From sequence record PQ657772.1: a DNA stretch of 64,000 nucleotides, one strand, 5' to 3'. The notes below the pieces were generated by a model. That model ran no database searches and had not been told where the DNA came from. It saw nothing but the letters and a program-made list of their open reading frames with translations. Position numbers and translations under genes: made by a program. Of the stretch, positions 4,312 through 46,432 are shown piece by piece (the stretch's first letter is position 1; every line of letters begins with the position of its first letter).

Positions 4312-5273
4312 TATCGGCCTCGCATACGGTGACAGAAATCAATGATTTGATCTACCATCTCATCATTCTCTTGTTGTGCAGAGTTTGCCATTACACTTTC
4401 ATCACCATAGATATCATCTTCTTTTTCGATATCAGCGATTGCATGAATCATTTCACCCATACCTGGTGCGTGTTGTGTTAGTGGAGATGGTGAATTTGGA
4501 TTACCGTCTGGTTCCATACCAGGCTCACCCATCACTTCACTATTAATTTCTTGTGGTGATTTCTCTTCACGAATTGTAGTACTTTGATTTTGATTGTCAA
4601 CTGGAGTCACATCATCCAAAGGGAAAACATTCAATTCGTTTGGCTTAGTGCCACTTTTGGTTACTACTAATGATTGTTGTGGATTTTGTCCAGCATCAAT
4701 ACCAACAACTGGTTCAATTGAATCAGTACCGCTTTGACTACCAGGAACACTAACTTTAATGTTATTAGCATTACGTTGTAGTTCTGCTTGTTTAAGTTTT
4801 GCTTGGGTTTGTGGATTAACTTGCTGTTGTTGCTGTGACACATTCATTTTAGCAATCTGTGTAGATTTTAATTGATTTTCTGGATTTTCCAAATTAGAGG
4901 ATAAATCTTCAAACACAATAGTTTTTAATTCTTGAATACTCAACTTAGAAACATCAGAGTATGTGAAGTTACTTTTGTATGCTTCAACTAAGTCTTTCAT
5001 TGTCATAGAATCAACTGTCTTATGCCAATCAGAACTTTCAACAATATGTTTAGTTACATTATCAGTACTGAAGTATGAGAAACTTTCACTCATTTGTGCT
5101 TTGTACTTTTGTAGAATTTGAAAAATTTCACGGTTATCTGAATTATCCATAGCGGCATTTAGTGTGATGAAATCACCCGCATCCATATTATCCAGTACAA
5201 CAGAAACATCAACATTCAAATTATGTGCGTCAGCAAACTTCTGTAGCTCCGCTGCTGTTTGGTTTATATCCAT
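4311..5273 (-). CDS. Hypothetical protein (putative virion protein)
   Basis: 320-aa ORF with GGAG SD and GATAAATA late box at 5319..5326. Confidence 0.7.
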   Translation of the reverse strand: MDINQTAAELQKFADAHNLNVDVSVVLDNMDAGDFITLNAAMDNSDNREIFQILQKYKAQMSESFSYFSTDNVTKHIVESSDWHKTVDSMTMKDLVEAYKSNFTYSDVSKLSIQELKTIVFEDLSSNLENPENQLKSTQIAKMNVSQQQQQVNPQTQAKLKQAELQRNANNIKVSVPGSQSGTDSIEPVVGIDAGQNPQQSLVVTKSGTKPNELNVFPLDDVTPVDNQNQSTTIREEKSPQEINSEVMGEPGMEPDGNPNSPSPLTQHAPGMGEMIHAIADIEKEDDIYGDESVMANSAQQENDEMVDQIIDFCHRMRGR

Positions 5274-7711: not shown

Positions 7712-8767
7712 TTACATCCACTTATCCGTTTGTGCTTTAATATAGAAAGGCTCGTCAACTATACTATCATGTATCAGTTGTAAACAAAATAATCTTCCAA
7801 ATCTAGCACATGCTTCGTCAAAATCTTTAATGTGACGTATAGTACTTCCAACACGTACTGCCCCAAAATCTGGGAAAGAAACACTAAATCCATATTCTAG
7901 TGCTTGTTCGATTGTTTGTAATCCATCCTTATCACGGTCTGGTACGATAACAATCTTTTTACCTTTTTCTTGTGCAGCTTTAAGTACATCTATTTGTACT
8001 GCTGACAATTTAAAGTTATTTGCAGAAACACCACCCATTAGTGCTGCATCCATTGGACCTTCACAAACTAATATAGTTTTAATTCGTTCATCTTGTAACA
8101 GATCATAATTATATAGAATATTAGTACTGACCTGATTAATAAAACGATAGGTACTTCCTGGGTCTTTAAGTTTGTGTCTAGCAGTATATCCGATAATTTT
8201 ACCGTTCATAACGTATGGTATGATAAATCGGTCATACATTTTATGTTCTTTAGCTGGACTCCAATACAATTCTAAATCTAATAGATATGGATTTCGCTCA
8301 TTCACATGATTCAGAACACTAATAAATTCTTGTGGTATTTGCTCTTCTGGTAACGATGCCCATTCCCAGAATGTTTTTGAGTTCGGTGGTAATTCACGAA
8401 CAGTTACACGTTGATATAGTTTAGATGCAGTAGTTTCTTGTTCTGCAAAGTCTCCACTATCAACCATTTCTTTAATGTAAAATTTAGCTAGTTCTATTTC
8501 CTTATCCTGTGCACCAAAAGAAATGAGCAAAGACTCCATATCTTTGCTCATATATTTTCCAGGTTGCCACCCAGTTTTTAGACTACAGTTAAAACAGTTA
8601 TAAGAAACAGAACCATCTGCGTTAAACATATGATTGCCGCGATTTTTAGTATCGGGGCGTGAATGACCACGGAACACACAAGCAGGACAATTGTGATGTG
8701 TCCACATACCAATTCCTGGTACTGGGTCATTCATGATTTGTGCCATGATGTTTTGTACAGCGTTCAT
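7712..8767 (-). CDS. DNA primase (T4 gp61-like)
   Basis: Zn-binding CPAC...YNCFNC; TOPRIM motifs VCEGPMDA and PDRDKDG. Confidence 0.9.
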   Translation of the reverse strand: MNAVQNIMAQIMNDPVPGIGMWTHHNCPACVFRGHSRPDTKNRGNHMFNADGSVSYNCFNCSLKTGWQPGKYMSKDMESLLISFGAQDKEIELAKFYIKEMVDSGDFAEQETTASKLYQRVTVRELPPNSKTFWEWASLPEEQIPQEFISVLNHVNERNPYLLDLELYWSPAKEHKMYDRFIIPYVMNGKIIGYTARHKLKDPGSTYRFINQVSTNILYNYDLLQDERIKTILVCEGPMDAALMGGVSANNFKLSAVQIDVLKAAQEKGKKIVIVPDRDKDGLQTIEQALEYGFSVSFPDFGAVRVGSTIRHIKDFDEACARFGRLFCLQLIHDSIVDEPFYIKAQTDKWM

Positions 8768-8796
8768 AATTTAATCCTTGTTATTTCTCACAAATG

Positions 8797-8826
8797 ATTA
8801 TAGCACAAACACTTGTTTTGTCTCAC
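8797..8826 (-). promoter_or_regulatory. Pre-replicative promoter, TGRGAC class
   Basis: GTGAGA-caaaacaagtgtttgtgc-TATAAT upstream of primase. Confidence 0.75.
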
Positions 8827-9800
8827 CTGCGAATCAAAATTTTAGGAACTGACAGTAGTGGGTCATAGACTTTTCTTACTGCCGCATAGTCATAAGGAAC
8901 TGGAACGATCTTAGGATGAATACAAACAACCAATCGCAACCACATGTAATTACCTTTAAAATTAAATGCTTGAATCCCATCTAACGCTTTAGGGAATCCA
9001 TTTTCATCAATATCATTTTCGATATATTCTTTACCATCCAATTTAACAATAAACCATTTATAGTTCTCGTTATCAGTTGGTACGTTATTACACAAACATC
9101 CTTGTAATTGAATTCTACCAATGAATTTATCAAAGTACATTGCAATAGTACTAAGACCATCAACTAATCCGTACTGCATTTGTGCAGGAAGGGGAGATGT
9201 TGCCATTATATCAAATTCACCAATAACGCCACGAGCGATTGGTTCATGATACAAGCGTTTGATGGTAGTCCATGCTGGGTTTTTATTAACAGATACTTCA
9301 ATACTTGGCACAAACACAGGAGCAGCTTGGTCGGAAATGATCAATTCAGCAGAGGCTTCATAATCAAGACCAGTGTATAAGTACTGTGTAGGTTCAATCA
9401 AGGAACCATCCATTGTTACTTTAGTAACACTCCATCTATATTTTGAACCAGGACTAGTATCCTGAATTACACCAGCAGGAACAATACATCCATAATATAC
9501 TTTTTTACTATTGCCTAATGTTTGTCTTGCTTGTCCACTTTCTGATAGCCATGATGGTTTTTGTTTATCCAAAACTACATCGAATAATTTAGTATTGTTT
9601 CTAGCATCAAAAATCATGAATGTTAGATATTCGTTATCTTTTAGTAATGTATATTTTCCATCAGCGTTATGCACTGTGAATGATAAATTGTTATTTGCAC
9701 CTCTGTATATTGTAAGTTTCTCATTGCTATATGGCATATTAAAATTGCCCAATGATACTTCTTGGTTATAAGGGTACATAAACACGCCGTGATGAGCCAT
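8823..9800 (-). CDS. Putative virion protein with BppU-like Ig N-terminal domain
   Basis: Start MAHHG at 9800 behind GGAAGGA; LTIYRGANNNLSFTVHNADGK resembles baseplate upper protein N-termini; CATAAATA late box at 9842..9849. Confidence 0.5.
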   Translation of the reverse strand: MAHHGVFMYPYNQEVSLGNFNMPYSNEKLTIYRGANNNLSFTVHNADGKYTLLKDNEYLTFMIFDARNNTKLFDVVLDKQKPSWLSESGQARQTLGNSKKVYYGCIVPAGVIQDTSPGSKYRWSVTKVTMDGSLIEPTQYLYTGLDYEASAELIISDQAAPVFVPSIEVSVNKNPAWTTIKRLYHEPIARGVIGEFDIMATSPLPAQMQYGLVDGLSTIAMYFDKFIGRIQLQGCLCNNVPTDNENYKWFIVKLDGKEYIENDIDENGFPKALDGIQAFNFKGNYMWLRLVVCIHPKIVPVPYDYAAVRKVYDPLLSVPKILIRR

Positions 9801-9812
9801 AGTTTTTCCTTC

Positions 9813-9849
9813 CATAAATAATAGGTATAAATTTATACTAATATTTATG
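9813..9849. promoter_or_regulatory. Back-to-back divergent late promoters
   Basis: CATAAATA on + at 9813..9820 and on - at 9842..9849; T4 late consensus is TATAAATA. Confidence 0.65.
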
Positions 9850-9857
9850 GAACTCAT

Positions 9858-10211
9858 ATGAATCAATATAATACTATTCCACCATTTATCACGGTAGTTC
9901 AGTGTGATGGTAAAACTTTCATTGGTATTATCAAGATAAAAAGTAAACAGTATACTACTCTTTACTGCTTTGATGATATGGATGAACCAATGCAAGATGA
10001 ATTGTTGGGTATAGCACATGATTGGTGGTGGCAAAGCAACAGGTCAATTCCAGTCTGTCTATTCTTCCAAGAAGAGATGGAGAAATTTGAACCTTACACA
10101 CAGAGATTCGATACCCCTGCGGTGAATTTCGTTTGTGGTCCAGTAGTTTCTTTAAGTGATTTGCCACAAAAACGCATCAAGCGTCGTAATGTGGCTCTTA
10201 AGAAGAAGTAA
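9858..10211 (+). CDS. Hypothetical protein
   Basis: 117-aa ORF with its own late box; basic C-terminus; converges on the mini-dnaE gene. Confidence 0.7.
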   Translation: MNQYNTIPPFITVVQCDGKTFIGIIKIKSKQYTTLYCFDDMDEPMQDELLGIAHDWWWQSNRSIPVCLFFQEEMEKFEPYTQRFDTPAVNFVCGPVVSLSDLPQKRIKRRNVALKKK

Positions 10212-10836
10212 GATGTTCAACTAAAGCGTTAAGTTGAACTACAATCATTAAGCTGTATGCATAAGCATGTGGCTTTTTGAAATATCGTAACTTATTTCCT
10301 GCTTGGTCTGTGCCAATAGTACTGTAATCCCATATAGTGGATTCAACTTCACTCCATGTATTCATACTTTGGCACTGCCTTTTTCCAGGACGAATCATTG
10401 CAATAAACATTGCAAGTTCATCAATGGATTTAGGTTTCCACACATTTAATAATGTAACGTGTTTTTTAATCTGTGAAAGATGTTCAACTATTTCTGGTTC
10501 TAACAGAAGATCCCAATTAGGTTCCTGATTCATTAGTTCTTTTAAATGTGCTCTATCACGAACATACTGGTAAGCCGATTGTGACAGGATATCTACCTTT
10601 TGATATCCCAAGCGTTCGGCTTCTTTATATTGTATGCTGGCTAAACCAGTGATAGGGTCAATTGGTATATTATCAAAATGAACACCACTGTTATGGGGGA
10701 TTAAACCATCCTCCGTAATTTTTTCTGTACTTCGCACACAAGGAAGCTGTGCAATCACTGACTTACTATCTTTAAAGTCAATGTCGATATCTGTTCGTGC
10801 TTTACGGTACGAATTAGAATTTGTCGAATCCTGCAT
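10198..10836 (-). CDS. Miniature DNA polymerase III alpha-like protein (C-family palm core)
   Basis: TDIDIDF, PHNSGV, GYQKVDILS, KPKSIDELAMFIAMIRPG and FKKPHAYAY match DnaE PDFDVDF, HAGGV, GLVKFDFLG, KPDCFEDMIALVALFRPG and FNKSHSAAY. Confidence 0.85.
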   Translation of the reverse strand: MQDSTNSNSYRKARTDIDIDFKDSKSVIAQLPCVRSTEKITEDGLIPHNSGVHFDNIPIDPITGLASIQYKEAERLGYQKVDILSQSAYQYVRDRAHLKELMNQEPNWDLLLEPEIVEHLSQIKKHVTLLNVWKPKSIDELAMFIAMIRPGKRQCQSMNTWSEVESTIWDYSTIGTDQAGNKLRYFKKPHAYAYSLMIVVQLNALVEHLTSS

Positions 10837-11143
10837 TTTTGATTTGCTCCTGCAATTTGTTTACAGTGTTAGATAATTTGGTTACCTGATTTTCTAACAT
10901 TGTACACTTTTGTTTGGTCTTTGACAACTCTTGACTTAGACCAAAGAATCTTTCCTCATGTCTTTCAACCATACTGATAATTTTTTCTACACGAACAGGA
11001 TCGTGCACCTGAAAGGTTTTACCATCAAGTGTAATTTCAGTTATAGAACCCTGTCTAAGCAATGATAAAGATTTAGATTTATCTGCTTTAGGCACAGGTA
11101 CATACCCTTCTGGTATTTTATTATATATACTTTTTCCATTCAT
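10814..11143 (-). CDS. Hypothetical coiled-coil protein
   Basis: 109-aa ORF with C-terminal heptads. Confidence 0.65.
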   Translation of the reverse strand: MNGKSIYNKIPEGYVPVPKADKSKSLSLLRQGSITEITLDGKTFQVHDPVRVEKIISMVERHEERFFGLSQELSKTKQKCTMLENQVTKLSNTVNKLQEQIKNAGFDKF

Positions 11144-11850
11144 AATCCAGCCTCACGTAGCATACTTTTTATTTCATCACATTCCTTTTTGTACTTTATA
11201 GTTTTAACCTCAAAGTAACTAGGATCAATGTATTTAAGTATATACTCGATTTCAGAGTTAGAGAGATTCTTGAAAAACTTATTAGTACTTTCTTTTGGTG
11301 CTAACCAGATAATCCAAGGTGAAATCTTACCACTCTCAATCCATGCAATTGCACGGGCAGAACTCACATTGGAAAAAAACTTATTCCACTCCAAGTTCAG
11401 ATTCTGACCCCATTCCACCATCGCAACAACACTACGGGAAACCGCAGCATTGGGAGATTCTGAACGAATACAATCTAATATCCATTCATCCTTTGCTTTA
11501 TAAGTACTCCATTCCATAATAGGACGGTTTCTTACAATTAGACTTTTTACAAAACCATCAATATCTAAAATATCACGGTTGTTCAAATAATAAATTGCAA
11601 AATCATAAAAATCACTAAAGTACTTTGATTTTATAAAAGCCATTAATGGTTCAACTCCCTTCTTGAAAGGGAAATGGTTTAACTCCATGAATTGCATATA
11701 AATGCGAAAAGCCTCCCTCATGGGGCGGCTATCACGATCTTCGTAGCGGTCACGTTTAACACACTTATGTGTGTTAACTGTGTCTTCGCGTTTAAATTCT
11801 TTATCACAGAACTTACATTTGTATACGGGACTACTTGATTTCTTTGCCAT
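11140..11850 (-). CDS. Hypothetical protein with N-terminal zinc finger
   Basis: YKCKFCDKEFKREDTVNTHKC (C2HC-type finger); lies within the replication cluster. Confidence 0.7.
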   Translation of the reverse strand: MAKKSSSPVYKCKFCDKEFKREDTVNTHKCVKRDRYEDRDSRPMREAFRIYMQFMELNHFPFKKGVEPLMAFIKSKYFSDFYDFAIYYLNNRDILDIDGFVKSLIVRNRPIMEWSTYKAKDEWILDCIRSESPNAAVSRSVVAMVEWGQNLNLEWNKFFSNVSSARAIAWIESGKISPWIIWLAPKESTNKFFKNLSNSEIEYILKYIDPSYFEVKTIKYKKECDEIKSMLREAGL

Positions 11851-12676
11851 ATTTCTTACATTCTTCTTTAAATAATTTCATCATTGATTTCATTTCTTTC
11901 TCTTGTAAACCTATGTCTTCAAGGAAAGACTCGAATGTTTTTTTGTTATATTGCAACAAAACAATTTTATATTCATCTTCGTTCATTTGAGTTGCGATTG
12001 AATCTGGCTGTGTACTTTTAATGAGTTCAAATAATTCATTATTAGCACGCTTAAAACTCTTGGAAAAGTTTAACCAGTTTCGTGGCAATTCCTTACCACC
12101 CAACATATCATGAACAGAACATAGTAGTTGATATACAAGTTCAGGGTGTTCTTTCATATCCCAGAACCCATCATTAACCATATCATTCAACATAATCAAC
12201 TGATAACGTACAACGTCACTGTCAACCAATGAGATGATCTGTCCACCAGCAATACTAAATTCAGTCATTGCTGCAATCAACTTGTTAGCATCATCATTGC
12301 TTTGTACGGCAAACTTGATACGCCAATCATAGTCACTGTGACAGTACTTAGTAACTGATGTTACATTAACACCAGTGCTATTGAGTTCTTTGACAAGTTC
12401 AGTTAGTGCTTCTTTACCACCAGCTTTCCACTTACCAAATACGTTTTCCACTTTACTACTAGGGAAAGTCACTTGAAGTGAGTCATCAAGTGAACTTACC
12501 CAACGAAGTACAGTATAAGGCGTAAATTCCTTACGCTCATCTTCGGTCATGTCATTATAGTATTTGTAATCTGCACGGTCAATATGTTTTAGAAATTCAG
12601 CAATAGAAAATGTATGCTGGGTTGGTTTATCGTTTTCGTCTACTGACTTAGCTTTAATATTACTGAAATCTAACAC
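11831..12676 (-). CDS. Putative clamp loader small subunit (gp62-like) with an internal insertion
   Basis: N-terminal FSIAEFLKHID...EFTPYTVLRWVS and later LIMLNDMVN...HPELVYQLL resemble gp62-type segments, separated by ~100 extra residues. Confidence 0.45.
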   Translation of the reverse strand: MLDFSNIKAKSVDENDKPTQHTFSIAEFLKHIDRADYKYYNDMTEDERKEFTPYTVLRWVSSLDDSLQVTFPSSKVENVFGKWKAGGKEALTELVKELNSTGVNVTSVTKYCHSDYDWRIKFAVQSNDDANKLIAAMTEFSIAGGQIISLVDSDVVRYQLIMLNDMVNDGFWDMKEHPELVYQLLCSVHDMLGGKELPRNWLNFSKSFKRANNELFELIKSTQPDSIATQMNEDEYKIVLLQYNKKTFESFLEDIGLQEKEMKSMMKLFKEECKKYGKEIK

Positions 12677-12678
12677 TA

Positions 12679-13176
12679 TTACACTCCTAGATACAAATCT
12701 TGAATTTTCTCGTTCTCATCTGCAAAGTAAACACAAGGTGGATTATCACCACTGTGCAGAGGAACACATAGTAAGTTCTTCTTAGGCAGCATAGGGATCT
12801 GCCACTTAGTAGTGAGTGCGAATACACGCAGTACTTTTACAGGTTCAAACTTAGGATACATCGAACGGATTGGATTGTAAACAAAAGCTTTAGGTTCTTT
12901 CATATTAAGAATGTTTTCAATGGTACACATCTCAACCATACCCGTCTCTTCATCACCCAACATGATTTGCCAACCCAATGGTACTTGGATAATCTTTTCA
13001 CCAATCTGCAAATCAGCACTGATACTATTAAATGATACAGTGTTCAAAATGTGGCGAAAATAAAAGTCAGAGTCACCGTTTGGACTCAAATCTAAAACAC
13101 AATACATTTCTGATGGAATGTGTTCAGTTACTAAATCCATATCAAATGAATTATTTTCTGGGGTTAATACGTTCAT
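12679..13176 (-). CDS. Hypothetical protein
   Basis: 165-aa ORF in operon; no motif recognised. Confidence 0.7.
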   Translation of the reverse strand: MNVLTPENNSFDMDLVTEHIPSEMYCVLDLSPNGDSDFYFRHILNTVSFNSISADLQIGEKIIQVPLGWQIMLGDEETGMVEMCTIENILNMKEPKAFVYNPIRSMYPKFEPVKVLRVFALTTKWQIPMLPKKNLLCVPLHSGDNPPCVYFADENEKIQDLYLGV

Positions 13177-13185
13177 CTCATCTCC

Positions 13186-13614
13186 TTAGTACTGGGAATC
13201 TTCATCTTCATCGTAGTAATCTTCTTCATCTTCATCGGATGTACCATAGAATTCAAGACCATACGTTTCACACATTTCTTGAATCTTATCAACATCGGTA
13301 TCTAAGTAAGAATCAAAATTACCACTAAGACTAACAACATCAATAAACGTTGTAGTATCAGTACTTGCATAGATGATATCATATTTTAATGATTCAACTT
13401 TCGAGTCAATTCTGGTTTGCAATTCATAGATATTAATCCATGAATTAGTGTCAATATTACATCTCCAAACATTAGTATCGTCAGTTTCTAGTTCAGGTAT
13501 ATAGTCAAGTGAAGATACCATGTCATCCATAATACCATCATCATTCAACAATACATCAATTATATCTAACGTTTCTTGGTCACAGATAAAAGCAATACTA
13601 GATCTTAATTCCAT
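13186..13614 (-). CDS. Acidic hypothetical protein
   Basis: 142-aa ORF, D/E-rich tail, promoter directly upstream. Confidence 0.7.
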   Translation of the reverse strand: MELRSSIAFICDQETLDIIDVLLNDDGIMDDMVSSLDYIPELETDDTNVWRCNIDTNSWINIYELQTRIDSKVESLKYDIIYASTDTTTFIDVVSLSGNFDSYLDTDVDKIQEMCETYGLEFYGTSDEDEEDYYDEDEDSQY

Positions 13615-13649
13615 TTTTATTTTACTTCCTTGTTGTTGTCATACGACAC

Positions 13650-13679
13650 ATTATATCATGTACAGCGGGATTATCCCGC
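13650..13679 (-). promoter_or_regulatory. Pre-replicative promoter (variant -35 GCGGGA) overlapping a hairpin
   Basis: GCGGGA-taatcccgctgtacatga-TATAAT; perfect inverted repeat tacagcggga-tta-tcccgctgta spans the uvsW stop. Confidence 0.6.
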
Positions 13680-15155
13680 TGTATTTTCCCAATCCTTAAC
13701 ATCTATGATACTATGAGGATATTGTGCTTCCTTATAGTATTGTAAACGTTCACGTAAGTGTTTTGCACTATATTTGTTTGTACCACTGATATCAAAGATT
13801 TCCACGTGGTCTTTGTCTTCTGCACGACGCAACCCACGACCAATGGACTGTATTGTACGAACGAAGCTTTTTCCTGGTTCGATTAGAACGACATTATACA
13901 AACGAGAAATACTGATACCAGTACTTGCTACCCCATAGGTTGCAATGAGTATTTTGTTATCAGCCCAGCGAATTTCACCATATGAAGATTCACGGTCTTT
14001 CTTTTTGGTTTCCCCACGAACAAATTCTGACTTAGGAATACCCAAAAATTCACAAAGCAATTCACCAGCTTCAAGTCTATCAACCAGTACTAAAGTGTTT
14101 CCAGATTCTGCTAACGCACCTATCAGTGATGCTACATATGCCATTCTATCACGGTCAGTAACTAAGTACTTCAATTCTTCTGCATATGACGCGAACTTTA
14201 AATTACTTTTAAGTTTAATACAGTTCACATTACATGTGCTTAGTATTTTTTTATCTTGTAATTCTTTAGCTGTGATTTTAAATATCACATCACCAACGTT
14301 ACATTTAATCTTCGCAGCGACAACTTGGTCTTTAGGGATTGTACCAGTTAATCCCCAGCGAAGTGGAACGTTATTCATAACTTTAGAGAGTACTTGAACT
14401 AATGCATCACCACCAGCACCTTGACACTCATCGACAATCACACAAACCACACCATCAATAAAGTCATGAACGTCTTGTTCAGTCAGTTCAATTTCACCTT
14501 TCTTTGTTTTCTTCCACAAAGAGTTGAATGACTGCCAGGTAGTGATTGTGTGTTGGTGACCAAAGTCTTTCTGTGCACCATAGAACACTCCAGTGTCAAG
14601 ACCACACATAACATAGTCATCATATGTTTGCTGCACCAAATCAGTACTAGGTACGATAATCACAGAACGTCCATACTCTTGTACCTTCTTGGATAATGCC
14701 GCTGTGATGAGCGTTTTACCAGCCCCTGTAGCTGCTAATAATAAACCATGTGGGTTTGCAAGACAAGCATTAACTGCGTTCACCTGATGCTCTCTGAGCT
14801 TGATTGACTTACCTTCCATGTGGTGTCCAGCACCAAACACAACATCACTAAAAATATCTTCATCAATTGGTTCAAAATTGAATCCGTAATTGACACGATG
14901 ATCTTCAAGTTCAATATCAATTTTTGCTTCATCTAAGATTGGCAACAACTTATCCAACATGTGGTAGTAAGTACTGCCACCTAAGTTCATAAACTGTACC
15001 TTACCATCCCAACGACCAATACGACCAGCAGGGGTGAACTTAGCGTATGGAAGTACATATTCTGTTGCACGAATCATCTTCTGACGAATTGAGGGATCTA
15101 GTCCCTCAAATTTACAATTAACCTCGTCCAGTAAGGTTAGCTTACAAGTTTTCAT
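13671..15155 (-). CDS. uvsW: SF2 DNA helicase (UvsW-like)
   Basis: LREHQ, ATGAGKT, VDECQ, GLTGT and QSIGRGLR motifs. Confidence 0.92.
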   Translation of the reverse strand: MKTCKLTLLDEVNCKFEGLDPSIRQKMIRATEYVLPYAKFTPAGRIGRWDGKVQFMNLGGSTYYHMLDKLLPILDEAKIDIELEDHRVNYGFNFEPIDEDIFSDVVFGAGHHMEGKSIKLREHQVNAVNACLANPHGLLLAATGAGKTLITAALSKKVQEYGRSVIIVPSTDLVQQTYDDYVMCGLDTGVFYGAQKDFGHQHTITTWQSFNSLWKKTKKGEIELTEQDVHDFIDGVVCVIVDECQGAGGDALVQVLSKVMNNVPLRWGLTGTIPKDQVVAAKIKCNVGDVIFKITAKELQDKKILSTCNVNCIKLKSNLKFASYAEELKYLVTDRDRMAYVASLIGALAESGNTLVLVDRLEAGELLCEFLGIPKSEFVRGETKKKDRESSYGEIRWADNKILIATYGVASTGISISRLYNVVLIEPGKSFVRTIQSIGRGLRRAEDKDHVEIFDISGTNKYSAKHLRERLQYYKEAQYPHSIIDVKDWENTAG

Positions 15156-15170
15156 CCATGAATACCTTTA

Positions 15171-15989
15171 TTAATTAGTTCGAGTATTATATTCGTACTC
15201 AAATGTATATACTAAATCTTTATCACAGTTTGGGTTACTTGCATCAAGAATATCACTGTTAGTAATCATCCATTCAATATAGTTCAATGGAACAGTTTCC
15301 ATTGGTTCGCCTTTGTGTTTACCAAATGGCATGAATTTATAACGCATTGGTGTATTACAGAATGTTACGATTTGTTCACCAATGTCACCATTAGGGTCAA
15401 TATGTCCACGTTCAATCGCAACTTCAATCAATTTGATTAGAACTTGATAACACATAAACACGTCATCTTTTGCTGCGTGTGCATTGACTGCACGATGTAC
15501 ATCACGATAGCAACCAAATTTATACCACAAATAACTTAGAGTTAAGTTTTTAAATTCAGTGTCTTCTGCAAACATCTTCTTAGCTAAACGAAGGGTACAA
15601 ATCCATTTATCTTCATCGAGCAAGTACTGCGAAACTGAGTTACGATATTTATATTCGTTATCTACCATCATTCGGCGGTCAAATTGAACGTTGTGTCCAA
15701 TAAAATAATTACGACACCCCATTAGTGCGTCAATGTTTTCTAAGTCATCTTTATAACCAATGCAGTTTGCTACATCTTCAGTACTGATAAAATGCACAGC
15801 ACTTGCTTCTGGTGGTATATCTTTTAGTGGTTTATAACGCAAAGTGTAGTTATCAATAGTATCAATATTCTCATGTGCATCGTGAGGATATGAAATACTA
15901 AATTCAATAATATCATCTTCACTTTCGACACCAGTTGTTTCGGTGTCTAGTACTGATACGTTTGATAGGAACTCATCTAATTTTGTCAT
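15171..15989 (-). CDS. DEDDh 3'-5' exonuclease (DnaQ/ExoX-like) with C-terminal MPFGKHKG domain
   Basis: LDTETTG, GHNVQFD and HAAKDD motifs; MPFGKHKG...VPLNYIEWM. Confidence 0.9.
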   Translation of the reverse strand: MTKLDEFLSNVSVLDTETTGVESEDDIIEFSISYPHDAHENIDTIDNYTLRYKPLKDIPPEASAVHFISTEDVANCIGYKDDLENIDALMGCRNYFIGHNVQFDRRMMVDNEYKYRNSVSQYLLDEDKWICTLRLAKKMFAEDTEFKNLTLSYLWYKFGCYRDVHRAVNAHAAKDDVFMCYQVLIKLIEVAIERGHIDPNGDIGEQIVTFCNTPMRYKFMPFGKHKGEPMETVPLNYIEWMITNSDILDASNPNCDKDLVYTFEYEYNTRTN

Positions 15990-16004
15990 TTTATTCTCGC
16001 ATAG

Positions 16005-16028
16005 AAAAAGGACGCGTAATGCGTCCTT
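16005..16028 (-). terminator. Intrinsic terminator
   Basis: aaggacgc-gtaat-gcgtcctt hairpin followed by a T-tract on the minus strand. Confidence 0.75.
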
Positions 16029-16036
16029 ATGGATAG

Positions 16037-16498
16037 TTATTCTAAACGTGCATCTTCAATACCAGCAGCACGTAGTCTCACAATATTGTTTAACTGAAAA
16101 GCTTTCATCTCTAAGGATTTAACAATACTGGAAAACGTATTACGGATATATGATACTTCATTTATTAGTTCTGATAATTCACAAACTTCTTTATCACCTT
16201 CAACATACTTTTTACAGTCAGAAGATGATAGTGCTCGACGATATGCTTCAAGGAAATATTTAAACTTTTCAGCTTGTAGTTGACGCATTTCAATTTCTAG
16301 CATTTCAAGTACCGCTTCTAGTTCTTGAAGCTGACTGAGACGAGTCTCATGCCAGCCTGGAATCTCCTGAGCAATCTTTTCAATGATGCCAATCTTTTTA
16401 ACTTCACGACGAGCTTCTTCAGTTTCTTTTTCGAAGTGTTCAATCATGTCGATTATTTTAGATTTATCATCTTTGATGATCCAATGCCAAGGTTTCAT
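16037..16498 (-). CDS. uvsY: Recombination mediator (UvsY-like)
   Basis: Helical 153-aa protein downstream of recA; C-terminal KSLEMKAFQLNNIVRLRAAGIED. Confidence 0.65.
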   Translation of the reverse strand: MKPWHWIIKDDKSKIIDMIEHFEKETEEARREVKKIGIIEKIAQEIPGWHETRLSQLQELEAVLEMLEIEMRQLQAEKFKYFLEAYRRALSSSDCKKYVEGDKEVCELSELINEVSYIRNTFSSIVKSLEMKAFQLNNIVRLRAAGIEDARLE

Positions 16499-17616
16499 TA
16501 TTCCTCACTACTTCCAATATCAGTACCAAATGATTCATCACCTTTTTCTTCTTCTTTGACTTCTTCAATCAAAGGGTGACGTTTGAATTGATTCATAACT
16601 AAATCAAGGCAAGAATCTTCGTTACGCATCCATTCTTTACGATATTTTAGAATCTGTTCACCAGTGTCAATATCAACGTACATTAGACGGTTACCAGATT
16701 TAACGATAAGTTCATATTTCTCGAACATATCTAGTAGACCACTGCGTGGGTCCATACCTTTATCCCAAGGAATTTTAATCTCAACATCTTCAAATGGTTT
16801 GTTGTAACGAGTCTTCATGACTTTACATTTAGAACGAATACCACTTACATCTGAAGTCTTGTTGCCTTCTTCATCTTCTTTAAGTTTTAGTTTACCCATT
16901 GCGATAACCATAGAAGATGCATAAATCAAACCACTACCACCAGATACTTTTGGATCAGGGTTGAACATATCTTGGGATTCATAACTATGGTTTACACAAA
17001 CCATACCAATGTTAAGTGAACCAATCGAGTTTACGCAGTTGGTGATGTAAGCTTTAAGCTGTTTAGGTTTGTGACCCATATCACCTTTCAAGTTCCCAGC
17101 TTTCATCTGGTCATTAGCAACTTCAGTATTCAACATACCAATTGAGTCGATAATGAATAATACTTTTTGACGTTCTTCTTTAGGAGTATTTTCGTATTCT
17201 TTACGATACCCTTCGATGAACTCATAGGTAAATTTAGCAACATCACCAATCATACCCATGTTTACTTTTAGTAGTTTTTCTTCTGAAGTGTCTACACCTA
17301 GTGCTTGTAGCCAATCTGAATCCAATGCGTTCTCGGAATCAATCATAACAACAAAGATACCTTGTTGTTGTGCTTCACGGGCGATGTTTCCAGAAACGAT
17401 AAATGATTTACCAGAACCAGATTCACCAGCAAACATTGTTACTTTACCTAGTGGAATACCACGGTCAAAATAACCACTAATACGATAGTTCAAAGCAAAG
17501 TTACCAGTACTAATCCATGTATCAGGATCATGAAAGCCTACGCTAACACCAGTATTCTTTTTAACGCTACCAGTACTATTTTTTAGAATGTTTGCAAAAC
17601 CACTTGTCATTTTCAT
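16498..17616 (-). CDS. uvsX: RecA/UvsX recombinase
   Basis: AGESGSGKS, IDSENA, IIDSIGML, SGGSGLIYASS and KTRYNKPF motifs. Confidence 0.93.
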   Translation of the reverse strand: MKMTSGFANILKNSTGSVKKNTGVSVGFHDPDTWISTGNFALNYRISGYFDRGIPLGKVTMFAGESGSGKSFIVSGNIAREAQQQGIFVVMIDSENALDSDWLQALGVDTSEEKLLKVNMGMIGDVAKFTYEFIEGYRKEYENTPKEERQKVLFIIDSIGMLNTEVANDQMKAGNLKGDMGHKPKQLKAYITNCVNSIGSLNIGMVCVNHSYESQDMFNPDPKVSGGSGLIYASSMVIAMGKLKLKEDEEGNKTSDVSGIRSKCKVMKTRYNKPFEDVEIKIPWDKGMDPRSGLLDMFEKYELIVKSGNRLMYVDIDTGEQILKYRKEWMRNEDSCLDLVMNQFKRHPLIEEVKEEEKGDESFGTDIGSSEE

Positions 17617-17642
17617 AATTCGCTCCTTGAATTTTATGAAAT

Positions 17643-17668
17643 AAAACGGGGCAAACTCCGTTGCCCCT
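17643..17668 (-). terminator. Intrinsic terminator after ssb
   Basis: ggggcaa-actccg-ttgcccc hairpin with T-tract on the minus strand. Confidence 0.7.
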
Positions 17669-17685
17669 TAACTTTTCAAATACTA

Positions 17686-18735
17686 TTACTTACCTTGTTG
17701 TTTCAAACGAGCAACTAGTGCAGATGCAGAAAGTTGTTCTTTTGGAGCTTCAGCTACTGGTGCTGGTGCAGCAGCTACTGGTTCAGCAGCAGGAGTAGGA
17801 GTAGCTACTGGTGCTTGCGGAGCAGGAGTTTGTGCAGGAGCAGGTTGTTGTACTGGAGCTTGTGGAGCAGGTTTGTTTTCACTAATAGTACCAGTTGTTG
17901 GTTTTTGTACACCTGCTGGACGGTAAGCGAAAGCCCAACGTGCAGGGTCATAAGGTTTACCATCAACAGATGCTTCGAACATTTCTTCGATAGCTTTTAG
18001 TTCTTCTGGAGTTGGTTGTTTTGGCATAAAATCATTTAGATTATATAGACCAAACTTTTCAATCGCTGCCAGTTCTTCTTCATTGAGTGGACGCTCTGAC
18101 ATGGAGAATTGAGACATGTCATAGCTATTGTAACCACCACCATTCTTAGTTTTAACAATACCAAAGTCACGACCGTGAATGTAGTGAGTTGGTAGTTCTT
18201 TGATGCCTGGGTTTAGCAGGATAGATTTAACTTTATCAAAGATATCTTTGTTAGCTAGGATACGACGGATTGGGTTTTCTGGAGCAATATCGTCTTTTAC
18301 TGCTACGCTATCAGGAGCAACGAAACATTGCATTAGATAGGTTTTCTTTTTCCAGTAACGACCAGCCATTGCTTTCAGTTCTTCGTTTCCAGTTTCATTC
18401 GCACTTTGGAACCATTGACGTACTTCTTTAAGAATTGGACATGATTTAGGAACCCACATTTCGTTACATGGTACTTGAACGGTAACTTTATCGGTGTGCA
18501 TACCAACAATACCTTGGAACGTTAGGTTGATCATATCACGTTCACGCCAGAAGAATGGGTTAGACTCATCAGCATCTGGTAGAAAACGTAGGTTTAGTGG
18601 TTCATTGTAAGGGACATTCCAGAAAGCTAGGAAAGAATCGGCTTTACGTTCACCTGTAAATGTACCATTCTTCTGTGCTTCTGCTTTTTCTTGTTCAGCT
18701 TTTAGTTTTGCACGAATTTCAGCTAGAGTTTGCAT
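17686..18735 (-). CDS. Single-stranded DNA-binding protein (gp32-like)
   Basis: LRFLPDAD...PFFW, VPCNEMW...CPIL, YWKKKTY and GRDFGIVKT motifs; Pro/Ala-rich C-terminal linker; start set at MQTL behind AAGGAAG. Confidence 0.88.
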   Translation of the reverse strand: MQTLAEIRAKLKAEQEKAEAQKNGTFTGERKADSFLAFWNVPYNEPLNLRFLPDADESNPFFWRERDMINLTFQGIVGMHTDKVTVQVPCNEMWVPKSCPILKEVRQWFQSANETGNEELKAMAGRYWKKKTYLMQCFVAPDSVAVKDDIAPENPIRRILANKDIFDKVKSILLNPGIKELPTHYIHGRDFGIVKTKNGGGYNSYDMSQFSMSERPLNEEELAAIEKFGLYNLNDFMPKQPTPEELKAIEEMFEASVDGKPYDPARWAFAYRPAGVQKPTTGTISENKPAPQAPVQQPAPAQTPAPQAPVATPTPAAEPVAAAPAPVAEAPKEQLSASALVARLKQQGK

Positions 18736-36805: not shown

Positions 36806-36895
36806 TATTATCTCCTTAAAGATGTTATATTCGTTTTTCAGTATGATATTATTTATAGAACTGAAAAATTTGATTATTAAAATGCTTTAAAATGT

Positions 36896-44894: not shown

Positions 44895-45103
44895 TGCTTC
44901 TCCACTCATCTCCTGAAGAAATACAAGAAGTACTTAAGGAATTTGAGTTGAATAAGTCAGATATTAAAACTGCATTAATGGAGTGTTCTGTTTATATGGA
45001 AAGTGTTGATTACGGAACACTACTTAATATGCCACTAATTGATAGAGACTTATTAGTTAAGTCTTTTAATAAGAAAATTAAAAAACAAAACGAGAAGCAC
45101 TAA
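44894..45103 (+). CDS. Hub assembly chaperone extension (gp51-like), in -1 frame to the upstream gene
   Basis: LLNMPLIDRDLLV motif; TAATG overlap; slippery T TTT TTC at 44882..44888. Confidence 0.6.
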   Translation: MLLHSSPEEIQEVLKEFELNKSDIKTALMECSVYMESVDYGTLLNMPLIDRDLLVKSFNKKIKKQNEKH

Positions 45104-45110
45104 CTCACAA

Positions 45111-45140
45111 GGAGCCAGCACATTGTTGCTGGTTTTTTTT
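45111..45140 (+). terminator. Intrinsic terminator
   Basis: ccagcaca-tt-gttgctgg-type hairpin followed by T8. Confidence 0.75.
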
Positions 45141-45144
45141 GGTT

Positions 45145-45812
45145 TTAAACTACAGAATTGATTGAATTGAATTATGAAAGGAATTAATTATTTTATAGTG
45201 AACTCATCTAACTCATTTCATTCGTTAGCTGAAGAATATTCGTTACTACGTAACTCATATTCATTTCTTATAATTAATTATAAAGAACTTTAAAAGATTT
45301 AATACTTGACGGGATTTGTTGAAGACATTTTCATCCCCCCGCAGGGGAATGAAGACAATAAAAAAGAGACAATTAAGTCTCTTAATTCTTGACGCTGATG
45401 GTTTCAGCATTTATTGTATTGCGAATTTCTTAAAATTCATTAAGAACGAAAGCGGGTTGCTCTGTTTCTCTCTATCGCAGTCATGTGCAACGGTCGTCAG
45501 TCTTAATCATCCTGACACTCACCTGAAAGTCTATACAATCAAACTTCAGGCTGTTTATTAAATCACTTAATAAACTCCCTTAGCAAATCTGGTAAGGTGC
45601 GATCCTTATACATCTATCGAGGAACTCTCTGTATGCTTATCGGAGTTCTTTATTGAGCCGTGTCGCCGTGAGGGGTTCAAACTATGCCCACATCTAACGG
45701 GTTTCTTCTGCTCATCGCACTGTTGAACTGCTCATCTGCCATCTACATTTTCGATAGGATCAGGTTCTAATTTATATGCATTTCTGCATTCAACAGGATT
45801 GTCATCACTACA
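45145..45812 (-). ncRNA. Candidate structured non-coding transcript or replication origin
   Basis: No credible ORF; at least 7 hairpins plus one long-range stem; promoter at 45819..45848 points into it; AT-rich low-complexity tract at its left end. Confidence 0.4.
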
Positions 45813-45818
45813 ATTAAC

Positions 45819-45848
45819 ATTATAGCACCAAATTCAAAAGTGTCTCAC
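45819..45848 (-). promoter_or_regulatory. Pre-replicative promoter, TGRGAC class, with no downstream CDS
   Basis: GTGAGA-cacttttgaatttggtgc-TATAAT. Confidence 0.75.
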
Positions 45849-45940
45849 TATTATGATAAAAAATTTATAAAAAGTACATAATTCTTGAACATTGAAGTAA
45901 CGCATAAATATTTTGATAAGAATTAGTTTAGTGGGGATTT

Positions 45941-46432
45941 ATGAAGAAAAGATTAAAAGATAGTAAAGAAGCTGCAAACTATCGAAATGAATTACTAAAG
46001 AAGCAAAAAGGAATTGATCCTATAATTAAGGAACCAATAACTAAGCCAGTACTTGATCACTATCACTTCGAGAATCAACACTGTCGTGAAGTTCTCCAGA
46101 ACGAAGTGAACGCATGGGAAGGTAAAGTACAGAACAGCTTTAATCGCTATATGAAGCACTTAACCGATAAACCCTTATACGAGGTACTACGAAATCTTGC
46201 GGATTATCTGGAGCGTAATAACAGCATTCCTGAAGATGAGCAAGTTATACATCACACTGCACTAACAATCGATACGAATAAGTTTAAAAGGCTCCCAGCA
46301 GGACAACAGAATGCAATACTGGAAGAGTTAGGTGTTATCCCTGGTGCAAACAATGCTGCTCGTGTTAAGCAAGCCAGAAAGCTTATCAAGGAAGGCAAAT
46401 TAAATATGGTAGATATAAAAAAAGGGAGCTAA
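45941..46432 (+). CDS. Recombination endonuclease VII-like resolvase (gp49-like)
   Basis: LLKKQKGIDPI...PVLDHYH...REVLQNEVNAWEGKV; CATAAATA at 45903..45910. Confidence 0.8.
   Translation: MKKRLKDSKEAANYRNELLKKQKGIDPIIKEPITKPVLDHYHFENQHCREVLQNEVNAWEGKVQNSFNRYMKHLTDKPLYEVLRNLADYLERNNSIPEDEQVIHHTALTIDTNKFKRLPAGQQNAILEELGVIPGANNAARVKQARKLIKEGKLNMVDIKKGS

Follow-up and report, generated by a model that had tools for sequence, protein, structure and literature searches.

The 64,000-nucleotide (nt) stretch of sequence record PQ657772.1 considered here, hereafter the window, matches the 356 kb genome of Escherichia phage EC.P1 with 100% identity; to 121Q, PBECO4 and G17, Rak2-like jumbo phages of the genus Asteriusvirus, identity is 89-93%. 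Its largest truly non-coding gap, at 45104-45940, carries on the minus strand the gene of a large, structured non-coding RNA with a compact fold. The RNA is about 500-650 nt long, with a core of ~425 nt set in a unit of 600-650 nt that includes a hinge and a 3' extension. On one side the gap is bordered by a baseplate-hub gene and an open reading frame (ORF) of 69 amino acids (aa), on the other by the EndoVII gene, all of them on the plus strand, and its GC content is 0.45-0.49 within and 0.21-0.29 at the edges. The phage is T4-related, with gp46/47, EndoVII and a T4-type baseplate hub near the RNA locus. In the annotations of relatives the gap is either blank or holds small ORFs without conservation.

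A first-pass annotation, made from the letters alone, had drawn attention to this gap as the largest non-coding one in the window, and for 45104-45940 the description holds. An ORF-free stretch from 61091 is longer, but it belongs to a giant plus-strand gene (61171 to beyond 64000; record 185171-195142; ~3,300 aa), which leaves the window and for that reason appears ORF-free in mechanical ORF lists.

Covariation and the predicted fold

The fold model was built on 45 distinct copies of the element. RNAalifold returned 73 pairs for them, 48 with compensatory changes, and three pseudoknots were added by mutual information and per-sequence duplex tests. Over the resulting 85 pairs, 97.2% of 3,791 cells are canonical and double changes occur in 57 pairs, as against ~40% paired cells and double changes in 15-25 pairs in slid-partner controls. 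Moreover, 14 copies outside the model-building set, from islands and metagenomes, satisfy 66-85 of 80-85 pairs. By this comparison, the RNA has ~14 helices and at least three pseudoknots. The modelled pairs include 319 G-U cells compared with 25 A-C cells, which identifies the minus strand as the RNA. Folding energy does not separate the strands, as each of them folds better than shuffled sequence (z = -3.3 and -3.7).

The pseudoknots were examined by comparing duplexes formed within a sequence with those formed between crossed copies. PK1 averages 7.4 bp within a sequence and 4.9 bp when crossed, and occurs in 20 distinct compensated versions; PK3 averages 7.6 bp and 5.3 bp respectively, in 16 versions, with mutual-information pairs at alignment columns 457-620, 459-618, 460-617 and 461-616. 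Seven compensated versions of PK4 are present, for example GUUAC/GUAAC and GUCAU/AUGAC. In P7 (UAAGG/CCUUA), 30 copies have AU at the pair 327-338 and 14 have GC, and one covarying tertiary pair (mutual-information pair 258-321) links J5/4 and J6/7. For P14 the alternatives GAUGC/GCGUC and GACGA/UCGUC were found in an alignment judged by eye. The helices are joined by conserved core junction motifs, among them CGAUAGA, CUAAGGGAG, CGACCGUUGC and GAGAGAAACAGAGCAACCCGCUUUCG. A hairpin module with the conserved loop GUACAAUAUAGAUCCGUC is optional; it occupies two alternative insertion points, at alignment columns ~385-430 and ~570-600, both of them in some copies, and is absent from the window copy.

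Much of the anatomy drawn earlier from the single sequence survives this comparison. Six of the seven stems proposed (45330-45353, 45364-45383, 45427-45446, 45522-45550, 45554-45574 and 45622-45648) are backed by covariation or by one-sided G-U changes. The seventh, 45578-45597, fails, as its CCUUA covaries with the upstream UAAGG of P7 and not with the invariant CUAAGGGAG. Covariation also contradicts a long-range pairing, GATCCTATCGA, proposed between 45751-45761 and 45601-45620: its 5' element varies and pairs locally, with compensation, as P2, and TCGATAGA is invariant. The reported duplication of GATGAGCAG is real, and restricted to the lineage of the window copy.

That the gap instead contains small protein-coding genes, such as g340 and g341 of fEgEco12, has in its favour the ORFs of 39-70 aa that automatic annotation places there in some records and an 81-aa ORF with a TTG start at 45316-45561 of the window. 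The latter is shortened to 45 aa in 121Q/G17, which are 93% identical. Across the copies no ORF is conserved in position, strand or length, in keeping with the earlier statement that none lies behind the promoter, and substitutions preserve base pairs and not reading frames. The probability of a coding function is accordingly negligible.

The predicted transcription unit

The unit is ordered as promoter, core, P14 with repeat 1, an optional terminator and U-rich linker, the G-rich hairpin, CAAAU with repeat 2, and the 3' extension (Table 1). The leftward promoter noticed at first reading is present and is kept in paralogues and orthologues: TGTGnTATAAT and TGGGACA/TGAAAC elements stand 5' of most copies in phages and islands alike. 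Within EC.P1, for which genome-wide counts cover 332 kb of the 356 kb, three of the four paralogues have an extended -10 element (TGnTAYAAT) and three of four a GGGACA/GAGACA -35-like element; paralogue C has ATGATATAAT and lacks this -35-like element. The promoter class [TG]G[GA][GA]AC-N16-20-TA[TC]AAT occurs ~20 times, 19 of them on the minus strand, and is used by three of the four RNA paralogues; examples in the window lie at ~45847 and 2402. In some paralogues of type C, the conserved 5' leader is separated from the -10 element, or from the gene before it, by a terminator-like hairpin with a U run, so that expression control differs among paralogues. T4-type late-promoter motifs (TATAAATA) occur elsewhere in the window, at 36857 and 38066 (minus) and 56602 (plus), 25-55 nt 5' of ORFs in a gene block that includes virion genes.

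Table 1. Features of the RNA unit, with the positions of its copies in EC.P1 and of an island palindrome (window coordinates unless stated otherwise; columns and numbered pairs refer to the alignment)
Feature	Position	Strand	Remarks
Promoter, sigma-70-type, GAGACA-N-TGcTATAAT	45846-45819	minus	consensus scan
-35-like element GAGACA	45846-45841	minus
Extended -10 element TGcTATAAT	45827-45819	minus
Transcription start	near 45812	minus	estimated
RNA core, ~425 nt	45388-45812	minus	P1-P14 and invariant junctions
PK1	45788-45796 with 45728-45720	minus	5' strand CUGUUGAAU, in the 5' leader, with P3 loop GUUCAACAG
Hairpin P2	45736-45763	minus	conserved loop GAAAAUGUA; columns 129-139 with 149-158, many double changes in several pairs
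P4/P5 domain	45654-45714	minus	UGAGC...GCUCA around CCGU...ACGG and a variable hairpin; columns 182-186/261-265, 196-199/250-253
Hairpin P6	45622-45648	minus	covariation among the strongest of the family; pair 274-296 with four pair types
Junction CUCGAUAGAnnUAUAAGG, hairpin P7, junction CUAAGGGAG	45576-45621	minus	near-invariant columns; P7 at 45608-45593
Hairpin P9	45521-45552	minus
PK3	45540-45533 with 45419-45412	minus	P9 loop GAUUGUAU with AUACAAUA (AUACAAU)
3' domain of core	45420-45517	minus	holds P10, P11, P12, P13
P10	45517-45495	minus
P11	45479-45475 with 45424-45420	minus
P12	45472-45448	minus
P13	45445-45428	minus
PK4	45491-45487 with 45460-45456	minus	GUUGC with GCAAC in P12 loop
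Hairpin P14	45388-45408	minus	ends in repeat 1
Repeat 1, CAGCGUCAAG	45397-45388	minus
Intrinsic terminator, hairpin and U run	45360-45382	minus	optional element; at 45383-45364 in the terminator scan
G-rich hairpin UUCAUUCCCC-UGCG-GGGGAUGAA	45330-45353	minus	holds G6 tract; invariant
Repeat 2, CCCGUCAAG	45305-45313	minus	conserved CAAAU before it
Conserved 3' extension	45208-45265	minus	AAUGAAUAUGAG, hairpin GUUAC-GUA-GUAAC, AACGAAUAUUCUU, hairpin CUAAC...GUUAG
Terminator of convergent genes (baseplate hub, 69-aa ORF)	45109-45138	plus	left unit boundary; annotated as a terminator in relatives
EC.P1 copies of the RNA	window 45272-45828; record ~254.4 kb, ~306.7 kb, ~56.8 kb	minus
Island palindrome, in four island extracts	4817-4843, 1929-1955, 4663-4689, 2707-2733

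An intrinsic terminator stands ~10-30 nt 5' of the G6 hairpin in copies A and B and in many orthologues, with a stem that covaries (AGAGAC, AGAUCC and AGUAC versions); paralogues C and D and many other copies do without it. The G6 tract, pointed out in the first-pass annotation, forms the invariant 3' strand of the hairpin, and the opposite C strand varies from C to U only, giving G-U pairs, which indicates that the hairpin pairs as minus-strand RNA. GGGGGGA[TA]G has four occurrences in the 332 kb of EC.P1 covered, one per RNA copy.

Repeats 1 and 2 vary in parallel through three lineage states, CGUCAAG, CGUCAG and, in RaK2, CUUCAAG. That the two change together points to a common recognition, and these co-varying CGUCA(A)G repeats, which flank the hinge, probably serve as sites of 3'-end processing or recognition. 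A closing helix between GAUGAG and repeat 2 was rejected, as its nucleotides do not vary and the change seen in RaK2 lacks a compensating one. After repeat 2, GAAUUGAG, AACGAAGUGA, AACGAAAAUUCUU and a covarying hairpin recur in phage and island copies. This 3' extension is retained with or without a gene behind it, and it may belong to the same RNA; its reading as a sigma-70 promoter (TTGACA) was discarded, there being no conserved -10 element.

As for expression, four RNA-type libraries contain contigs over 45443-45722 whose depth is ~2-5x that of neighbouring late genes, and in one small metatranscriptome this segment is the only part of 3 kb present. Such coverage is suggestive of transcription. 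Words of the island-type RNA occur, as word matches only, in very small RNA libraries.

Copies in jumbo phages and chromosomal islands

EC.P1 carries four copies of the RNA, all on the minus strand and each in its own ~650 bp gap, spread at ~57, 169, 254 and 307 kb of the genome; Rak2-like relatives carry 2-5 copies per genome. The region 45288-45782 is found with ~70% DNA identity in Mimasvirus GAP32/CBB, Eneladusvirus BF/Yen9-04, Munch, Hallingskeid and XbC2/XaC1, and RaK2/K64-1 have homologues of the core with weaker DNA similarity. A motif scan of IMG/VR with an nhmmer filter added at least 44 further copies, most of them on contigs of ~350-380 kb and the rest on shorter ones, and metagenome contigs hold more beyond that set; the counts of phage and island copies are lower bounds. 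Among the phage records and the viral and metagenome contig matches listed, the carriers are jumbo phages only, and no temperate phage in the phage collection has the RNA.

The four EC.P1 paralogues are ~65-70% alike and diverged anciently. Each keeps distinct pseudoknot sequences, as expected of separately folding, specialised molecules. No relation exists among the genes that neighbour different copies; their products are a DUF7325 protein, a sigma factor, EndoVII, an ADP-ribosylglycohydrolase and hypothetical proteins. The sigma-70-family protein (322 aa, regions 2 and 3; EC.P1 57339-58307, minus) is encoded directly 5' of paralogue D; 121Q and RaK2 have them adjacent as well, whereas ~4 kb separates them in Serratia phage BF. 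In genomes of the Eneladusvirus/Mimasvirus type (Serratia phage BF, Xanthomonas phage XbC2) an extra paralogue lies just 5' of the ADP-ribosylglycohydrolase gene, its 3' extension stopping a few bases before the ribosome-binding site of that gene. ARAGORN found no tRNA or tmRNA gene in the window, and 13 kb lie between paralogue D and the tRNA cluster of the phage. Enrichment of GTAC/AGTAC near the copies was not significant.

That a genome holds several copies in differing surroundings, that direct repeats flank the hinge and that mobile islands carry the RNA could also be expected if it were the remnant or the RNA component of a selfish mobile element, be it an intron, an IS200/605-family guide RNA or a miniature inverted-repeat transposable element (MITE). 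The low identity among paralogues, each of which has cross-genus orthologues, however speaks for old genes kept by selection and not for active copies. Further, neither annotations nor Pfam scans of the neighbours of the copies examined revealed a transposase, a reverse transcriptase or TnpB/IscB, and the intron and HEARO models of Rfam do not match. We regard such an origin as very improbable.

Full-length homologues with their own promoters are also present, one copy each, in integrative islands of E. coli, Enterobacter/Klebsiella, Atlantibacter and Buttiauxella. In E. coli, 2 of 5,426 complete genomes carry the RNA (nhmmer 450 bits), in an island beside ffs with an integrase gene and the candidate defence system PDC-M45. 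In strain LR-29-1 (NZ_AP027515.1) this island lies between ffs and ybaA (7958-18302 of the extract examined), its integrase split by IS3, and contains the RNA, a resolvase and a trio of mSLOG/DUF4326, DUF488 and DuOB genes (PADLOC PDC-M45). The other islands, traced from a Buttiauxella contig by means of a backbone membrane protein, were found in Enterobacter/Klebsiella, Atlantibacter and one other Enterobacteriaceae genome; one variant of this protein occurs in 108 blocks of the contig index. Most islands share the order large serine recombinase, cargo, RNA, CI-like repressor, Cro-like protein, membrane protein, LprI, resolvase and defence cargo such as Kiwa, from which the E. coli ffs island differs in having a tyrosine integrase and no CI-like repressor. 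The RNA is present in every island examined and is placed in the conserved backbone, not in the variable cargo. A perfect palindrome, CTATAAATATC-GGTA-GATATTTATAG, occurs once per island in four of five islands, 40-110 nt 5' of the RNA promoter, and is absent from the E. coli ffs island; it may be a recombinase or regulator site. Its reading as a CI operator was rejected, as the CI-Cro intergenic region has no second copy.

At the level of DNA, islands and phages have only the RNA in common; of the island proteins tested, a single one, a DUF4326 protein from the cargo of the E. coli island, has a phage homologue. As the sole item common to both, the RNA gene would seem to be portable and self-sufficient and to need no dedicated protein. 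Between the copy of the E. coli island and a copy of Serratia phage BF identity reaches 80.6%, and phage XaC1 holds an island-type copy; both observations point to phage-island exchange. It is worth considering that the RNA serves phage-island conflict, the island copy being a decoy or sensor, or the phage copies mimics that neutralise an island function. Besides the signs of exchange, the defence cargo of the islands (Kiwa, the PDC-M45 candidate, PLD-like and SMC-like genes) would suit such a role. Yet the RNA sits outside the variable cargo, the islands are common (the 108 index blocks hold a single backbone variant) and Rak2-like phages rare, and no island protein is linked with the RNA in both contexts. 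A role in conflict is, on balance, decidedly unlikely.

Family status and modes of action

Searched against Rfam 15 at gathering score, the whole window gave no match, and the matches of 45000-46000 at E up to 10, to terminator-like small RNAs, were all weak and ascribed to chance; in the five island loci ffs alone was recognised, and the island RNA at E up to 1 had none. The Rfam 15 families without a match include ROOL, GOLLD, OLE, HEARO, RNase P, tmRNA, 6S, group I/II introns, hammerhead and RNAI. A search of the literature found no description of the RNA. As far as the libraries searched reach, it is taken to represent a previously undescribed family. A hammerhead-like reading of CAGAUGAG...CGAA was set aside, as U4 is A and positions 13 and 14 vary in the alignment inspected by eye, and Rfam gives no match; likewise an RNase P-like reading of ACAGAGCAACCCGC and AGAAACCCGUUAG, a resemblance only, finds no matching model, and the helices differ. 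An unclassified large non-coding RNA had been the second choice of the first-pass annotation, and this interpretation is strongly supported: compensatory changes, pseudoknots, strand-specific G-U pairs, the lack of a conserved ORF, a promoter and terminator, copies across genera, RNA-library contigs and the absence from Rfam all agree with a structured non-coding RNA gene. The Rfam search and the covariation analysis across relatives, both suggested there, yielded no Rfam match and conservation of sequence and structure.

What the RNA does may be approached through known large RNAs. ROOL, GOLLD and OLE form RNA-only homo-oligomers (PMC12286853). Like these, the present RNA is large, predicted from its promoter to be independently transcribed, and rich in helices, pseudoknots and conserved junctions; they are 500-800 nt long, often borne by phages or prophages, and need no dedicated protein to fold. 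It differs from them in lacking sequence or covariance-model similarity, in belonging to Enterobacteriaceae jumbo phages and islands, in having 2-5 diverged paralogues per phage and in not standing beside tRNA genes (13 kb separate copy D from the closest ones). PA5oct, a jumbo phage related by its authors to the 121Q/RaK2 group, produces ncRNA002, of 451 nt and accounting for up to ~5% of phage reads (PMC7318152). This RNA is similar in scale (~450 nt) and likewise a jumbo-phage non-coding RNA without an assigned role. Homology was rejected: nhmmer at full sensitivity found no match in the extract (452-902), and the invariant motifs are absent. The wider jumbo-phage group thus carries at least two unrelated, unexplained large RNAs.

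We lean modestly towards an RNA that acts in trans and owes its activity to its three-dimensional fold, as do the "ornate large RNAs" ROOL, GOLLD and OLE. Needing no dedicated protein, it would have to act alone or with host machinery: it may form an RNA-only assembly or be a ribozyme, or it may bind a conserved host machine, for which transcription, translation, RNA decay and replication are the candidates. Action in trans is favoured by copy A, which is kept across more phage genera than any other copy and in at least six lineages has no co-directional gene downstream. Several points weigh on the other side. Many copies lack a terminator and run straight into the downstream gene, so that some could act in cis. 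For the parallel-changing repeats, a search for a partner complementary to the two found no conserved site. The support from RNA libraries consists of assembled contigs without strand or ends, and DNA carry-over is possible. Finally, the dispersed multi-copy layout would also suit a replication origin.

Indeed, an RNA-primed replication origin like ColE1 RNA II or T4 oriF/oriG was the interpretation preferred at first reading. According to such a model, host RNA polymerase would make a transcript whose G-rich 3' part hybridises to its template and is processed to a primer, with downstream hairpins as single-strand initiation sites; jumbo phages would then have 4-5 origins and islands one. RNA II of ColE1/pMB1 has a sigma-70 promoter, a structured RNA of ~550 nt and a G-rich element toward its 3' part, and depends on host factors only. 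The present unit resembles it in the sigma-70 promoter, the structured RNA of ~0.5 kb and the G-rich element in the 3' part, here an invariant G6 hairpin followed by AT-rich DNA. The structures 3' of the unit are sense-strand hairpins. T4 oriF/oriG offer a comparable layout, in that the phage is T4-related, a promoter precedes AT-rich DNA and several sites are dispersed over the genome. The islands, too, are without a recognisable replication gene, and with the RNA as the sole module in common with phages, only host factors would be needed. Against an origin stands, first of all, the intrinsic terminator, which precedes the G tract in many copies. The three or more covarying pseudoknots and the invariant junctions far exceed the needs of a primer. 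Host factors alone would suffice, yet none of 72,556 PLSDB plasmids, taken as a proxy for autonomous replication, is matched by the phage or the island query. Where copies are co-directional with the next gene, that gene starts ~100-150 nt after the unit and its ribosome-binding site is within tens of bases. GC skew follows gene orientation only and has no inflection at any copy, and all four copies share one orientation. Unlike RNA II, the unit has no conserved antisense promoter of the RNA I kind and no Rfam RNAI match. To our knowledge, the T4 origin transcripts are not conserved structured RNAs, nor are the T4 origins mutually paralogous, whereas here the RNA fold is the conserved object. 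Weakened by the terminator, the elaborate fold, the gene spacing, the flat skew and the absence from plasmids, the R-loop primer is unproven and, to our mind, rather unlikely. The earlier annotation was thus mostly right in its anatomy and right in its second interpretation, less so in its first.

A cis-acting transcription element, that is, a giant leader altering RNA polymerase or the transcript and thereby setting downstream expression, is likewise unlikely, and doubtful in any of its modes (put-type processive antitermination, a riboswitch acting on its own terminator, or antisense interference with a convergent gene). A terminator inside the conserved unit, with conserved sequence beyond it, is what such an element might have; long arrays of minus-strand genes begin with paralogues B, C and D, the ribosome-binding site of the next gene follows immediately on the 3' extension, and the island unit converges on the CI-like repressor gene. 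These features contrast with the genes downstream, which differ and are unrelated among copies, with copy A and its lack of a co-directional gene, and with a length of 500 nt, several times that of known antitermination RNAs. HK022 put, the processive-antitermination RNAs and 6S are also folded, made by the host polymerase and active on it without a dedicated protein; they are, however, far smaller (~70-190 nt) and of other architectures, and no model of them matches. The sigma-gene adjacency of one paralogue is a lead towards RNA polymerase, nothing more, and any link to the polymerase drawn from gene order is a guess.

Large, highly structured RNAs of bacteria and phages are rare, and most have proved to be ribozymes, ribonucleoprotein scaffolds or, recently, RNA-only cages. 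Tentatively, the RNA described here may be a new class of ornate RNA: a protein-independent, horizontally exchanged module that jumbo phages have amplified to 4-5 specialised paralogues and defence islands keep in their backbone, and that might be a ribozyme or self-assembling, engage a host machine or take part in phage-island conflict. Were the origin model to be true, the RNA loci would be the replication origins of Rak2-like phages, for which our literature search found no reported origins. The annotation of dozens of jumbo-phage genomes, in which the locus is blank or filled with spurious small ORFs, is corrected, and an unannotated conserved backbone element is flagged in common enterobacterial defence islands. 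The family is also tractable. It offers dozens of diverse sequences with clean covariation and natural sets of paralogues, and its systems are compatible with E. coli K-12, the close relative phage Sharanji growing on MG1655. It also occurs in two kinds of mobile element that are unrelated and otherwise have nothing in common, and this combination is unusually well suited to working out its role by genetics, pull-downs and cryo-electron microscopy.

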